Of a stretch of DNA of 64,000 bases, positions 35,216 through 56,646 are shown one piece after another; the stretch's first letter is position 1; every line of letters begins with the position of its first letter. The notes below the pieces were generated by a model. The model saw nothing but the letters and a program-made list of their open reading frames with translations. It was not told the DNA's origin and did no database searches. Source of the DNA: Utricularia gibba (Eukaryota > Plantae > Magnoliophyta). The DNA lies in contig NEEC01000020.1 in NCBI GenBank assembly GCA_002189035.1, positions 1 through 64,000 on the forward strand. The letters are read 5' to 3'. Position numbers and translations under genes: made by a program.

Positions 35216-37185
35216 TTACCAGTAGTCGTTACAGGAGCAAGCTCCATCCTGAAAATGATGGTAGCGTATAGGATCCCTGATTACGATTGTTCGATTTTCC
35301 AACTTTGCTATCAATTTAGCAAAAACATGACAGTCGCCACATATCCTCAGATTTTTCCTAATTCTTATTGTCTTCTCCTTGGGCATGCTCATCAGACCAT
35401 AAACAATAGCCAGTTTCTCGCTGTGGTGTTCAAGTGAGCTCTCCATTTGTTCTCCTTCAAGATCTTGCAACACAAAATTGGTGTCTGGCACATACCCTAC
35501 TTCACGTAGTCTCCAGATCATTCGACTCAACTCACTGTAAATGGCATCCATATCTGGGTGGGATCTGTCACCTAAAATGAAAGCATGAACCTCTTTATTC
35601 ATTTCTATCCAACTACATCCAGGTTCTTTTTTAATTCCATCAATCTTCATGGACCTTCTCAAAATTTCAGCATCTCCCCATCTCTGAGTGTTGGCATACA
35701 TATTTGATAGCAAGATATAAGTTCCAGCATCATGTGGATCCAGGCTCAAAACCTTTTTAGCAGCATACTCCGCAAGATCCATGTTACGATAGATGCGGCA
35801 TGCACCGAGCAATGTTCTCCATGTCACAGCATCCGGTTCACATTTCATTTCATGAATTAGCTTAATCGCTTCTTCAAGCTTCCCTGCTCTACCAAAAAGA
35901 TCAACCATGCACCCGTAATGCTCCCTTCCAGGATCAATTCCAAAAAGACACTTCATTGATTCAAAGTAACGTTGTCCGTCTTCCACCAGTCCAGCATGGC
36001 TGCAGGCAAACAGAACACCCAGAAATGTGATATAATTAGGCTTGGCCCTGAAGATTTCATTGAATCAAATAATTCTAGAGCTTGACGGCTGTAACCATTT
36101 TGGGCAAAGCCTATTATCATTGTACTCCAGGATATTACATCTTTCAGGACCATTCTCAGGAAGACAGCATAGGCATCTTTCAAGCTACCAGACTTACAAT
36201 ACATGTCAACAAGCGCATTGTTCAAGGCCAAGTCCTTATTGAATTTGATGACATGCACATGGACTTGTCTTCCAAGCTCTAACAATGCTAAACTAGTGCA
36301 AGCTCGTAAAACACTAGTCAAAGTTGAATTATCAGCCCAAAAACCGGATCTCTTCATTCTTATATACAAATTCACCGACTCATCCCCATCATTGTTCTGA
36401 GCGAAGGCACCAATTAGTGAATTCCAAATAACCGGGTCTGAAGTAATCATTTCATCAAATATGCGAAGTGAGTCTTGAAGTTCTCCAAATTTAGCAGAGT
36501 TATCAATTAGAGCACTTCGTACAAAAACATCCAACTCCAAACCAACCTTGATTATCAAACTGTGAAGTTGACTAAGGTCAGAATAACACTCACAAGCTCT
36601 CAAAACAGAAGAATATGTATACATATTGGGCTGCACACCATCTCTAAGCATCATGATCAACATATTTAATGACCTAGAATTACTTCCACAGTTGGCATAT
36701 GCAGCGATCAATGTTGTCCAGGAAACAACATTCCTTTCATTCATTTGATCAAATAAGGTTTGTGCGTCATCCAATAAATTAAATTTCACATACATGTTCA
36801 AGAGGGAGTTTATGAGAAAAGTTTTGGGTTCATAGCTTCCGGAGAAAACATGAAAATGGACTCTTTTTCCATGTTCTACAGCACCATGAGATATACAACA
36901 CTTAATCAGCTCTGCATAGGTGACTGAATCAGCCCATAAATTATGTTTTTGCATTGAGTCCAGGACCAGCATTGCCCTGGGAAGATTCCTCTGATAGCAT
37001 TGTGCTCTGAATTCATTTACTACATCTAAGAGAGCGCAAGATGATTCAACGGTTACCGTCCCCGGCAGGGTTACTAACCCCGAGTAGAATGAGAGACGCC
37101 GAAGAGAAACTCTGGATACAGAAGTACTTAAATTTGCCAGATAGATGATCTTATAGCACTTTTGGTCTGATAGGCATCTCATCAT
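35216..37185 (-). CDS. REME1: PLS-class PPR protein with E-DYW deaminase domain, mitochondrial editing factor, At2g03880-like
   Basis: CYQRNLPRAM...LWADSVTYAELIKCC, PLS repeats, KKEPGCSWIE, HHSEKLA, KNLRICGDCH, C-terminal DYW. One-base frameshift at about 36042 (GPKPNYIT). Orthology is from recalled similarity. Confidence 0.9.
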
Positions 37186-48764: not shown

Positions 48765-51062
48765 TCACAGAGGATCTGTTTGAGTTATCAGAAGCGGGCT
48801 TCTAACAACGTGCTTCCCATCCATCCAAGAAATCGAGCCAAACAAAGCCCCTGAATCGCCCAGCGAAAGATTTCCACTTTCAGCATTTACACTCACGATG
48901 TATGCTTGTTTCATCGCCTTGCCTGAAAACACCAACTTACGTGGCTTCACACTGACAATCACCCCTCTTGGTTGCTCGATTCTCACCCGGTAAACAGCAT
49001 TCACCTCCGCACCAACATTGGTCACCGTTCTAAAGAAGGTCTTTTTAGTAGCATTGTGTGGCAAGGAAACCGTGATTGATGGGTAGTTGAAGTTCTCCGA
49101 CAAGGGCTTCCTCGCTGGACAACGCACTGGCGAATGCGTGATCACCTCAATCGTCTTGGGGCTATATCCTACTGAACACAAAAAGTAGGAATAATCATCC
49201 TCCGAGAGGTCATAGACCAGCCCAGGGTCCATAGCTAATTCAAGATTCAAGTTGCCAGCACCAAAATCATACGGGGAAGCTGGTTTTTGGTTGGCTTCAT
49301 CCCACACTGGACTCAGGGAGTTGTCAAGTAAGCTTGCAGTAGTCATCATAGCGGACCTTAATGCTGCAGGGCTCCAATCAGGGTGAGCAGATTTCAGCAA
49401 GGCGGCTGCGCCACTAACATGTGGGCAAGCCATTGATGTACCGGATAAAATATTGAACTCGACTCTGCGAGCATCGGAATCCAAGCCAGTCGGACCAACA
49501 GCGTCTGTCCACGCCGCCAGGATGTTAACCCCTGGAGCAATCAAGTCCGGCTTGAGAATTTGTGGGTTCAATGCATTTGGACCCCTAGCAGAGAATGAAG
49601 CTACGACTGGCGCTGGTTTGATGCCGATTACAGTTCCTCCGAAGTTAATGGTAGCAGTTGCAGAAGGATTTGAGGCTAGATATGATTTCAACTCATCTCC
49701 TACATGATATCCAACAGAACAAGATGGAATCATGTGGGCGTCGCCGACGAGGCCTTCGCCGTTGGAGATTCCATTGGCGAGAATCATTCCGACGCCGCCA
49801 GCTTTCTTGACAACCAAACCTTTAGCTACACGCGGATTGCTCCCTCGATCACAGATAGCAATTCTGCCTTTGATGGAACTGGGGTCTAACGAGTTTTCCA
49901 TACACAAAGAAGCAGAGAGCATTCCTGACTCACCAGGGTAAACCAATGGGTACATCTTCCCGTTCAAAGGTTCGCCGGCGTATAAAGACACACCCGAGAA
50001 TTTTCTCCCGTCGCTAAGAACCACCTCTGCCGGGAAATTCCGGTCGATGGTACCAGCACCAACGGTTGTAAGCCATGGTGCAAGATTCGTGACAGACATA
50101 CCGTTGGGGCCGTCGTTGCCAGCGGAAGAAGAAACGAAAATCCCCCTTGAGACGGCCGAGTAGGCTCCGATTGCAATTGGATCTAGATAATAAGGAGAGG
50201 AGATTCCCTCACCCCCGCCAACAGAAATTGAAATGACGTCAACACCGTCTTTGACGGCGGCGTCGAACGCGGCCAGAATATCTGAATCCAAGCAGCCGGC
50301 GCCTCTCCAGCACACCTTGTAAACTGCAAGACGAGATTTGGGCGCCACTCCCTTCGCAATCCCCGAAGCGAAACCCTCCAAGCTGGCATTGAAAGAGTAT
50401 CTTCCGGCGGCGGTGGAGGCGGTATGAGTCCCGTGGCCATCGGCATCTCGCGGCGATTTGAACTCAATCGTGTCATTGATTCCACCAATTGCCCCAGCGA
50501 AACCCGAACCAGCTTCATGCCCTTTGGAGAAAAACCTCGCACCGATGATTTTTCTATTGCAATTCTCGTGTGTGAACTCGACACCAGTTTGACAAATTCC
50601 TCTCCAACGGTCCGGCACAGGACCCAGATTCAGATCCGAAAAACTCCTGCGCTCCGGCCAAATCCCGGTATCAAAAATTCCAATTATAACATCAGAGCCA
50701 TAATCCGACTCGGACCACAAGCCCTCCTGGTTCCGCAGACCAATAAACTGCGGCGACCGCGTTGTATGCAGCTGTCGCCGTCTGTCCGGGAACGCCGCTA
50801 AAACTGCCGAATGCTGGAGAGAAGACGCAGCCTCGTCCGCAGTGAGCAAAGCAGAAAATCCATGAAAAACAGTGTCGTAAACGTGGAGTATCTTAGTGGG
50901 CTCCGTGAACTCCGCAGTGTACCAATGGTAATGGGTTGGAAAAACCGACGGCTTGGAAAAAGCGTCTACCCTGAGAATGTACACCAACGGCGTCTGAGTT
51001 GAACCAATCAGCGCAACCTGCAGAAGAACAATAACAAGATACGGAAGAGTAGAAGAAGCCAT
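48765..51062 (-). CDS. SBT1.6: Subtilisin-like serine protease SBT1.6, intronless
   Basis: Signal peptide, I9 prodomain, LHTTRSPQFIGL, catalytic motifs DTGIWPE, DGHGTHTASTAAG and SGTSMACPHVSG, PA domain, Fn-III C-terminus. Confidence 0.95.
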   Translation of the reverse strand: MASSTLPYLVIVLLQVALIGSTQTPLVYILRVDAFSKPSVFPTHYHWYTAEFTEPTKILHVYDTVFHGFSALLTADEAASSLQHSAVLAAFPDRRRQLHTTRSPQFIGLRNQEGLWSESDYGSDVIIGIFDTGIWPERRSFSDLNLGPVPDRWRGICQTGVEFTHENCNRKIIGARFFSKGHEAGSGFAGAIGGINDTIEFKSPRDADGHGTHTASTAAGRYSFNASLEGFASGIAKGVAPKSRLAVYKVCWRGAGCLDSDILAAFDAAVKDGVDVISISVGGGEGISSPYYLDPIAIGAYSAVSRGIFVSSSAGNDGPNGMSVTNLAPWLTTVGAGTIDRNFPAEVVLSDGRKFSGVSLYAGEPLNGKMYPLVYPGESGMLSASLCMENSLDPSSIKGRIAICDRGSNPRVAKGLVVKKAGGVGMILANGISNGEGLVGDAHMIPSCSVGYHVGDELKSYLASNPSATATINFGGTVIGIKPAPVVASFSARGPNALNPQILKPDLIAPGVNILAAWTDAVGPTGLDSDARRVEFNILSGTSMACPHVSGAAALLKSAHPDWSPAALRSAMMTTASLLDNSLSPVWDEANQKPASPYDFGAGNLNLELAMDPGLVYDLSEDDYSYFLCSVGYSPKTIEVITHSPVRCPARKPLSENFNYPSITVSLPHNATKKTFFRTVTNVGAEVNAVYRVRIEQPRGVIVSVKPRKLVFSGKAMKQAYIVSVNAESGNLSLGDSGALFGSISWMDGKHVVRSPLLITQTDPL

Positions 51063-51823
51063 GGGAGATCCAGTAGGCCTGAAGAGAATGGAGTGACGAC
51101 AGCAGCAACAAAAGCCCCCATATGTATAAAACAAGAGTAGATCAGTCTTAATCCACGTCCTAATCATGTTTATGTGCCCTTCTTCACTTGAAAACATTTG
51201 TTGGGTCACAACTAAATGCCCACCGCCTTGCGAAATTAATAATTAACTAAATACGTTGTTATTAATTTCTGGGCAATTAACTGCGCTAATAATTGAGTCC
51301 GTCCTTGCAATTTGTATTGACAGAGGAAATGAATGCAGTTGTCGTATCTCACGGCGGCGGACGCATGAATCAAATGCCTCAACTACCCCCTAACGGCAAA
51401 AAAATCCACATCAGGTTCACTTCTGATGGATCAGAACCAGCGCTCCGGCATCTCCCGACCCCGAAAAATATGCTATCTAAGCCTTCCGCATTAACACAAC
51501 CATGTATTATTCTTACGGTTTCCCCGGAACCCTGGACTAGAGCAAGTTCTGTCTTTCACTGCTAAGCGTCCAGAATCCACCACTTCTAGAGTCTATGCCA
51601 AGGAGGTTGATTTATTGTGTGTATAATGCAGTCCAGAAGGTCAAATTGCCTATGGTTTACAGGGGGCTATTCGCTTTCCGAATTCTGTGAGACAATTTTC
51701 AATTTGTCAGAAGGTGGAATACAGAGATCATGGCAATGACATCTGGGGGGGCTCTTCGATCAGAGGTAGCTCCGAGGAACCGCAAGCTGGATTACAGGGG
51801 ATGTCAATGTGGGAGAAACGAGG

Positions 51824-52900
51824 CTAGTCGACATAGATGATTCCTTCATCATCAAAATCATCTCTTTCCCGGATTGAATAATCATTGGCTCCATCACGTG
51901 AATCTTCAAGATCATCATCGTCTTCATCGTCCCTGGAACCTTTCCGGGCGTTCTCTTCCTTTAGTCTATCCAAGATAGCAATCACCTGATACAAAAACAT
52001 GGAATGATATGGCGTTCCCATTGCGGGAATGCGGAGAAAGTAAGCAATAGTGAGATTAGTTCCTGAGAGGATGCAAAATCTCACCCTGCTTCCACGTTCC
52101 TGTGCTTCATCTTCTAGGAATCGGATCTCTGGTGTAAGCCGCAACTTCAGCCGCTTTCCCAACTCACTACGAACATACTTTGCCTTCGATTTAAGTCCTG
52201 CTAGAGCAACTTCCTTGCCTCTCTCGTCCCCAAAAACAGATACATACACCTTAACAACCTACGCATCAGCAGTAGAACAGGTGAATGAGATGCCGAATCA
52301 TTCAAAAGATCATTGGAAATGCAACAGAAAGATGGTGGGTTCAGACATCAAATTTTGAACTTCCAAGACATCGAATGATTTTGATAAGAACCACACTTCT
52401 GACATAAATTTCCTAAAGTCTTCTAAAAACACACCGCATTATACTTCAGAAACATTTTTATGTATGTGTTTCATTACCACGACATAGCTAAGGCTGGATC
52501 GTTGCAAACTGCTGATAATTTCATAGATTAAAGAGAAACCTTTTTGGCTATTCTTCAATTCCCTACTTCCCAAGTAAAATTTAAAGCGATTCTATCATAA
52601 GTCAAGTTAACCTGCAAATCAGAAGAGATTTCAACATCGCTGATAGTCGTGAGCGATGATAAGTATCGATCAGCACCCAAGGCAGCTTCTGGCAACACCG
52701 CATATTGCAAAACCTTATCCTTAAGCAGCATATCCGACAGCTCTCTCCGAATCTGCTTCGCTACCATCTTCACCCTCCTCGAATTGGCCATGCATTTTAT
52801 CCTCCCCTTTGAAGAGAAAGTCTGTCGCAATAGCCAATATGCTGCCGCCGGTGAATAACCATCGGAAATGTAAACGAACTCGGAGAAATGACATTGACAT
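51824..52900 (-). CDS. RBF1: Plastid ribosome-binding factor A, 3 exons; N-terminus uncertain or chimeric
   Basis: KCMANSRRVKMVAKQIRRELSDML...ISDVEISSDLQ / VVKVYVSVFGDERGK...LTPEIRF / VIAILDRLK...DEGIIYVD*. No in-frame ATG upstream of the transit-peptide end in this assembly. Confidence 0.9.
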
Positions 52901-53168
52901 GCTCTTCGAATATTTTCTGGAGTTGGTTGTTGGTGACGGCTCTAGGAATGTTACCGATATACAATCTTCTCGCAGCGGGGGAGGACGAGTTTGCGGTTGC
53001 GACAGAAACTGTTTCCGACAAAGCACGGCGTCTTCCGAAGGAAAGAGATTGGGGTTTTGCAAGCAGGAAATTGAGATTCGAGAGAGAAGGTTGGATTTGG
53101 AGGGATTTAGTGGGCTCTTGCTGGAAATTTACAGAAGTTAGGGATAGCGAGCAAGAAAGAGTGGCCAT
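52899..53168 (-). pseudogene. PSRP2: 5' fragment (90 codons) of plastid-specific ribosomal protein 2, joined to RbfA
   Basis: Transit peptide followed by SPAARRLYIGNIPRAVTNNQLQKIFEEH, which matches PSRP2 RRM1 start (AARRVYIGNIPRTVTNEQL...EEH). Nothing after EEH is present. Confidence 0.85.
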
Positions 53169-53404
53169 TGGAGGGAGAGGAGGGATGCGGAGCGGCGACT
53201 GTATTCTATCCGGTGCAGTGCCGGTTCTTCTTCTTCCGGCTCTAACACTGACCGAACCGGAAGGCCCAACAGGGTGAATTTAAAAAGTAACCATCCTACT
53301 GTAATTTTTTACCATTTTATTTCTTAAAGATTCCAGGTGCTCCTTCGCTCTTAGATGCATTTTAGTCCTTTTAACCCGAAAATTGGGGAGCATGTGTCAG
53401 TAAT

Positions 53405-54549: not shown

Positions 54550-54926
54550 ATGGGAAGATCTATCAGGATCCCTCGTCATATCCTCCGTTTCCGGCGAGTT
54601 CTCTGCTCATGGCGGCGGATCCCCGATATGGGTCTCCCTCCCGACGTCCCCCAAGGCCACGTGGCGGTTTCTGTCGGGATCAGTTGCCGGCGTTTCGTAT
54701 TCCCGGCGACCCACCTCAACCACCCTGTTTTCCGGGACTTCTCCGCCTTGCGGAGGAAGAGTACGGGTTCGGTAGTTACTCCGGGCCGCTGGCGATCCCC
54801 TGCTGCGACGAGTCTCTCTTCGAAGAGATCCTGGTAGGCGTGTCCCGAGGGGAATCCTCGAACGTCCTCCTCCGACTGTGTCAGGCCGCCGGCGTGATGA
54901 ACGAGGAGGCGCAGGAGCAAAGGTAA
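54550..54926 (+). CDS. SAUR: SAUR auxin-responsive protein
   Basis: DVPQGHVAVSVG...RRFV.PATHLNHPVF, then (after a missing G at about 54735) LLRLAEEEYGF...GPLAIPC. Confidence 0.87.
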
Positions 54927-56340: not shown

Positions 56341-56646
56341 ATGGGAATCAAGTTTGCTGGGATCAGGAAGAAGCTGCAGAGCCGAGTTTCCAACAATGCC
56401 AATCTCTCCGCAGCCGCGGAAGCCGCGGCATCCTCCATCGACGTCCCCAAGGGGCATTTCACGGTCTACGTCGGAGAAGCTCACCGGAGATTCGTGGTGC
56501 CCTTGTCGTTCTTGAGTCAGCCATCCTTCATGGAGCTACTGCATTTGGCCGAGGAAGAGTTCGGGTTCAATCACCCAATGGGGGGCATCACGATCCCATG
56601 CACCGAGGACTACTTCATAAACCTAACGCACTTGTTGAAATGCTGA
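56341..56646 (+). CDS. SAUR: SAUR auxin-responsive protein
   Basis: DVPKGHFTVYVGEAHRRFVVPLSFLSQPSFMELLHLAEEEFGFNHPMGGITIPC. Confidence 0.95.
   Translation: MGIKFAGIRKKLQSRVSNNANLSAAAEAAASSIDVPKGHFTVYVGEAHRRFVVPLSFLSQPSFMELLHLAEEEFGFNHPMGGITIPCTEDYFINLTHLLKC

Follow-up and report, generated by a model that had tools for sequence, protein, structure and literature searches.

Results

A gene fused from PSRP2 and RbfA

We analysed a 64-kb stretch of DNA, which is called the window here. A gene that joins sequences of two plastid proteins lies entirely on its minus strand. Most probably it is a chimeric nuclear gene, specific to its lineage and 297 codons long, in which a partial 5' copy of PSRP2/cS22 stands in frame upstream of RbfA. 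Codons 1–90 (52899–53168) form the PSRP2/cS22-derived module. Its start codon and transit peptide are followed by the N-terminal tail of the mature protein and then by the opening strand and helix of RRM1 as far as FEEH. This assignment comes from Pfam, structure and protein matches, tblastn, and a DNA alignment to exon 1 of Sesamum PSRP2. A linker at 52792–52898 (VNVISPSSFTFPMVIHRRQHIGYCDRLSLQRGRIKC, 36 codons once a missing base has been corrected) leads to the conserved RbfA part of exon 1 at 52612–52791, which reads from MANSRRVKMVAKQ... to ...SSDLQ. Both introns are GT..AG introns in phase 0. Intron 1 (52259–52611, 353 nt) is defined by splice joints in runs X6 and X11, and intron 2 (51986–52084, 99 nt) by a joint in X6. 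Between them lies RbfA exon 2 (52085–52258, 58 codons), and the coding part of exon 3 (51824–51985) encodes the acidic C-terminal tail and ends with the stop codon. The 3' UTR occupies 51609–51823 and reaches at least to the end of an RNA contig, record 14 of X6.

One base is missing from the assembly between the two parts

In the assembly as given, the PSRP2-type ATG at 53168 opens a frame of 123 codons, and this ATG is 377 nt away from the ATG of the conserved MANS motif (52791). The last His codon of the PSRP2-derived part (52901–52899) overlaps another ATG (52900–52898). These positions agree on recount with those reported in the first-pass annotation of this DNA, which had also proposed that one extra base would produce an in-frame PSRP2-RbfA fusion.

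Contigs of four public runs from four samples were aligned to 51600–53400. X1 is DNA and may be the sample behind the window assembly, so it is not independent. X4 is DNA from another study and is about 1% different from the window. Two further studies supplied X6 and X11; their RNA label was guessed by the tool and is backed here by spliced joints only. All read evidence consists of assembled contigs, which are blind to transcript starts, strand and abundance.

All four runs inserted one C behind plus-strand position 52803, so that the homopolymer at 52804–52807, with 4 C in the window, has 5 C in every run. No other indel was found in the coding sequence in these contigs, and in record 14 of X6 the extra C is the sole difference from the window. 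Both the DNA and the RNA runs thus confirmed the in-frame fusion, and the frameshift between the PSRP2 and RbfA parts is an assembly error. With the extra C counted, the donor presequence is in frame with the recipient mature coding sequence. The corrected exon 1 (53168–52612) is 558 nt long without a stop and reads ...FEEH VNVISPSSFTFPMVIHRRQHIGYCDRLSLQRGRIKC MANSRRVKMVAKQ..., and exons 2 and 3 continue it in phase 0 to complete the 297 codons. The restored GRIKCMANS matches NRTIICMANP of Lamiales RbfA, which is an independent argument that the corrected frame is real.

Two other ways of dealing with the frameshift were rejected. The first-pass annotation had considered an RbfA start at 52900, with two restored bases and the PSRP2 part as an upstream ORF; exactly one base is missing. 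An intron that removes the frameshift does not exist, since the RNA contigs follow the DNA unbroken over 52609–53120.

The junction at 52899 is crossed unbroken by DNA contigs of two studies that span 51600–53120, those of X1 with 0 differences and that of X4 as a 6885-nt contig, and it is therefore no misassembly. RNA contigs of X6 (52609–53120) and X11 (52609–52990) cross it as well. An assembly artefact that wrongly joined PSRP2 and RbfA has a very small probability. The assembly does have single-base errors, and the contigs of all runs break at 53091–53173 because of a repeat. However, this repeat is 190 nt upstream of the junction, within the PSRP2-derived part, and the junction itself is spanned in both DNA studies and in both RNA runs. 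The first-pass annotation was prepared to give up the fusion if there were a misassembly at about 52900 or if RbfA transcripts started downstream of the PSRP2 segment; neither was found, as DNA and RNA contigs run across 52900.

The chimera is transcribed as one spliced mRNA

Record 14 of X6 is one 1061-nt contig that covers 51609–51981, 52081–52255 and 52609–53120. It spans the 3' UTR and both spliced introns and extends into the PSRP2-derived part as far as codon 17. The intron 1 joint also occurs in X11, which has a contig over 52609–52990 as well. No intron was present within 52609–53120 in the RNA contigs. RNA depth ends at about 53173. Neither DNA run has a splice joint, and therefore no processed DNA copy explains the spliced form. 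Together, record 14 of X6 and records 4 and 6 of X11, being contigs in which transcript ends are not shown, demonstrate that the chimera yields a single mRNA from which both introns are spliced out, and further transcripts starting downstream are compatible with them.

The 5' module is the start of a PSRP2 gene

The PSRP2-derived frame begins at 53168 with MATLSCSLSL... and runs to ...AARRLYIGNIPRAVTNNQLQKIFEEH at codon 90. Residues 69–90 (LYIGNIPRAVTNNQLQKIFEEH) matched positions 1–22 of the 70-position Pfam profile RRM_1. Among solved structures, the best matches to the chimera N-terminus were spinach PSRP2/cS22 (5mmj_v, E 4.7e-11; 5x8p_v, E 7.5e-11), while other RRM proteins matched with E 4e-3 or worse. 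The alignment to spinach cS22 stops at EEH.

The PSRP2-derived ORF was also scanned with HMMER against 1.84 billion representative sequences. PSRP2 precursors aligned from their own Met1 through the transit peptide, so the chimera contains a region homologous to the N-terminus of the PSRP2 precursor. The '30S ribosomal protein 2, chloroplastic' of Sesamum angustifolium showed 55% identity over chimera residues 1–93, and the second named match to these residues was the Macleaya 'small ribosomal subunit protein cS22'. The first 48 residues have a transit-peptide-like composition (25% Ser+Thr, 1 acidic and 5 basic residues), and alignment to mature spinach cS22 places the transit peptide at about residues 1–48. 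The top match of the scan (P0121, E 2e-27) was a 2029-residue protein with 8 stretches matching query residues 59–115, presumably a multi-RRM or repetitive protein.

When the window was searched by tblastn with three PSRP2 orthologues, two of them matched exactly 53168–52899, and the alignment of the third (Rumex) continued weakly to 52827. The remaining matches in the window were weak and lay at 36739–37056, in a putative different RRM gene. The PSRP2 signal is confined to the start of the chimera; therefore, by this search, the remainder of RRM1, the inter-RRM linker and RRM2 are absent from the 64-kb window. The first-pass annotation had claimed a PSRP2 start without the remaining PSRP2, and this was borne out by Pfam, by the cS22 matches and by the tblastn search. 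PSRP2/cS22 is defined by two complete RRM domains. With 22 of the 70 RRM_1 positions and no RRM2, the module is a PSRP2 fragment and cannot be the cS22 ribosomal protein.

The 3' part is an orthologous RbfA at its ancestral position

The Pfam domain RBFA (PF02033) was scanned on the exon 1 piece and on the exon 2–3 ORF separately. The exon 1 piece matched positions 1–43 with 22.4 bits, which is under the cut-off of 34.7 for this piece alone, and the exon 2–3 ORF matched positions 47–101 of 105 with 50 bits, over the cut-off. Taking both pieces, the domain is present in full length. The RbfA part of exon 1 has 84–88% identity to Lamiales RbfA, and the best database matches were chloroplast RbfA proteins of Lamiales (Sesamum, Andrographis, Penstemon, Paulownia, Erythranthe and a partial Genlisea protein). 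GKRLKLRL and ILDRLKEE are common to the window RbfA and the Genlisea fragment only, and these two details suggest a probable origin of the window in Lentibulariaceae. Intron 1 follows ..DLQ, which is also where Erythranthe and Sesamum RbfA have it. The best matches, the intron position and the neighbourhood all identify this part as an orthologue of plant RbfA.

In Erythranthe guttata and Sesamum, RbfA has divergently oriented SAUR genes on its upstream side, and no gene with an RRM separates the two. This SAUR-RbfA arrangement recurs in the window, with SAUR genes at 54550–54926 and about 56350–56646. Since these upstream neighbours are shared, RbfA has stayed at its ancestral place, and it was here that the PSRP2 piece was joined to it.

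The first of these SAUR genes (54550–54926, plus strand) is split over two overlapping frames. Its N-terminal half is in the ORF 54550–54837, and positions 48–92 of Auxin_inducible are in the ORF 54609–54926. The frame shifts near 54735–54745, probably by another single-base loss of the assembly. On the other side, downstream synteny is broken in the window, where a subtilase gene (48765–51209, minus strand; S8, PA, fn3_6 and inhibitor I9 domains) directly follows. RbfA is followed by a rotamase, an amidophosphoribosyltransferase and a Dus gene in Erythranthe and Genlisea. The Sesamum locus has the rotamase and the amidophosphoribosyltransferase after RbfA and ends before Dus.

Origin of the PSRP2 piece and of the linker

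As no RRM gene lies between SAUR and RbfA in Erythranthe and Sesamum, we infer that the PSRP2 piece arrived by partial duplication, and a fusion by deletion between an adjacent PSRP2 and RbfA was rejected on the same ground. The PSRP2 loci of Sesamum and Macleaya lie among other, unrelated genes, which also speaks against such a deletion. PSRP2-RbfA adjacency, which the first-pass annotation had suggested looking for in relatives, was found neither at the RbfA loci of Erythranthe and Sesamum nor at these two PSRP2 loci.

PSRP2 exon 1 in relatives extends about 8 codons past EEH, to ..GAVEKAEV, in gene models reading into intron 1. The break therefore falls inside PSRP2 exon 1 and not at an exon border, and classic exon shuffling at the exon 1/intron 1 boundary of PSRP2 was rejected because of these further codons.

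The linker contains an in-frame ATG at 52862–52860. Its last ~20 nt align to RbfA orthologues, and DNA homology is clear only from about 52812 downstream. Two candidate sources of the linker were tried and found no support. As a remnant of the transit peptide of RbfA itself, it was compared with 17 Lamiales presequences, and 129 of 500 shuffles scored as high. As a diverged end of PSRP2 exon 1 or intron 1, its alignment to Sesamum was no better than expected for T-rich sequence. These comparisons speak neither for nor against the join by microhomology at the RbfA start codon that the first-pass annotation had suggested. Genlisea aurea was also considered for dating the fusion; its scaffold KE531072.1 begins about 50 bases before RbfA exon 2, and exon 1 is missing from it.

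A second locus shares the start of the module

Positions 53091–53173, which hold 5 nt of leader and codons 1–26, are repeated exactly at a second locus. In all four runs this stretch forms a separate short contig. Its depth in the DNA runs was 16 in X1 (7–9 in the flanks) and 73 in X4 (35–45 in the flanks), and in X6 it was nearly five times that of the flanks. A 505-nt contig of X11 matches 53091–53166 and then continues into different sequence, in which a GCTCCGCATCC motif in common with the window leader is retained. The excess of depth and the diverging contig point to a second, more strongly represented locus with a related 5' leader, whose first 26 codons are identical to those of the chimera. 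This locus is probably the parent PSRP2.

The leaders of the chimera and the second copy resemble each other over only about 30 nt of 5' UTR. The second copy has no ATG at the homologous position, and its transcript extends more than 400 nt farther upstream. The second locus is the one observation that bears on the presumed capture of a PSRP2 promoter, as suggested in the first-pass annotation. On the reading preferred here, what was copied from PSRP2 includes a leader of at least about 30 nt, its start codon and transit peptide, and 22 residues from the beginning of RRM1.

The mature RbfA part is conserved between alleles

Over 51600–53300, X4 has 18 single-base changes relative to the window. 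It also lacks 12 nt of intron 1 (at 52297) and has one additional nucleotide at 53196. The 513 nt that encode mature RbfA have 0 changes, and the introns and flanks (about 800 nt) have about 10, i.e. about 1.25%. Seven changes (5 replacement, 2 silent) fall in the 378 nt of the N-terminal part, which includes the PSRP2-derived codons and the linker. There is no indel in this part, so the frame is kept in both alleles. X11 carries both window-like and X4-like variants over 52961–53073, and this sample is heterozygous or pooled. The distribution of changes indicates that mature RbfA is under purifying selection. The N-terminal extension appears to evolve about neutrally and yet stays open, which fits a transit peptide and would equally fit an untranslated leader.

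These data also bear on whether the chimera is decaying or non-functional, with RbfA function supplied from another genomic copy. We regard this as very unlikely. The assembly as given is frameshifted, and two RbfA copies are often kept in Lamiales genomes, e.g. in Salvia splendens and Castilleja. However, the frameshift comes from the assembly, splicing is correct in the RNA contigs of two studies, and the gene is at the syntenic RbfA position. The absence of changes in the mature coding sequence, set against about 1.25% in the non-coding flanks, also argues against decay.

Discussion

How the chimera may work

If translation starts from the first AUG, the product would be a precursor whose PSRP2 transit peptide would carry RbfA into the stroma. 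Alignment to mature spinach cS22 would put the cleavage near residue 48, at FGRRR/ALSE. About 78 residues would thereby remain as an N-terminal tail on the mature protein. This tail is probably unstructured, and its 22-residue RRM stump would be too short to fold alone. By orthology, RbfA would act in late maturation of the 30S subunit and 16S rRNA, as in other plants. There was no indication of a retained cS22 function of the stump. cS22 itself is located at the foot of the 30S subunit, and Arabidopsis can do without it under standard conditions (PMC5737520).

The presequence ahead of MANS has 50–63 residues in Lamiales relatives. RbfA made from MANS alone would be without a presequence, which suggests a need for the extension.

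Alternatively, the PSRP2 part could be mainly a leader, with RbfA made from the AUG at codon 103 (MVIHRR..., 24 residues ahead of MANS) or at codon 127 (MANS itself), and a remnant of its own presequence directing import. We consider this unlikely. The first AUG has a pyrimidine at -3; on the other hand, it has G at +4, the 120 nt upstream of it are without ATG, and the scanning model prefers a first AUG. The 5 replacement and 2 silent changes in the N-terminal 378 nt are about neutral between the alleles, but both alleles, despite their 7 differences in this region, keep the 126 upstream codons open and in frame. An Arabidopsis RbfA model (P0053) with only 18 residues ahead of MANP provides a precedent for a short presequence, although it may be a poor gene model, and 24 residues are far below the 50–63 found in all Lamiales RbfA examined.

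It is also conceivable that the PSRP2 segment does more than deliver the protein. Since the break follows the first RRM1 strand and helix, mature RbfA would bear a PSRP2-type tail. With about 40 residues of the PSRP2 N-terminal tail on mature RbfA, together with a captured PSRP2 promoter, the level of RbfA and perhaps its 30S contacts could be tied to cS22. A further variant would make the chimera the remnant of PSRP2, which presumes that the second locus is not an intact PSRP2. We hold these ideas to be improbable, slightly more so than the internal start. If the tie to cS22 were true, it would slightly rewire the assembly of plastid ribosomes, in a plant whose genome is extremely streamlined.

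Comparison with known systems

In its mature part the chimera is an ordinary chloroplast RbfA of the Arabidopsis RBF1 (At4g34730) type with the same three coding exons. At least the position of intron 1, the acidic tail ending in IIYV and the upstream SAUR neighbours are those of plant RbfA. It differs from Lamiales RbfA in that 126 residues (90 from PSRP2 and 36 of linker) replace the presequence of 50–63 residues. With PSRP2/cS22 (5MMJ chain v, 5X8P chain v), the chimera is collinear over its first 90 residues, from Met1 through the transit peptide to ARRLY(V/I)GNIPR...EEH at the beginning of RRM1.

The best 120 angiosperm RbfA clusters (125–399 residues, nearly all of them 205–245) contained no RRM Pfam hit. 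No fused form was present among these 120; the proteins of the source species are apparently missing there, so this result carries little weight. A word search with the 123-residue ORF gave no match, nor did an exact 34-nt pattern in metagenome contigs, and our literature search found no paper on a PSRP2-RbfA gene.

Borrowing of a transit peptide from a duplicated plastid-protein gene is already known. The standard example is SOD1-rpl32 (with plastid Cu-Zn SOD as SOD1) in Populus and other Malpighiales, a presequence capture by partial duplication or exon shuffling, as summarised in PMC8018952. In such cases a nuclear gene of a plastid protein donates the transit peptide and a mature stub, and one fusion precursor is made, as proposed for our chimera. 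Import was demonstrated by GFP in Populus, whereas the import of the PSRP2-RbfA product would be expected from the composition of its presequence and from homology to a known transit peptide. The recipients in the known cases were newly moved from the organelle and were without a presequence. In contrast, RbfA has long been a nuclear gene and had a presequence of its own, so in the chimera the PSRP2 piece is a replacement or an extension. In addition, both the donor and the recipient protein work on the plastid 30S subunit.

The chimera would provide a clean, datable natural case in which the import signal of one plastid-targeted protein was taken over via partial duplication, and would show how easily transit peptides are exchanged. 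It would also be a natural test of how much foreign N-terminal sequence RbfA tolerates. As the frameshift is an assembly error, annotators should neither call this locus a pseudogene nor split it into two genes.
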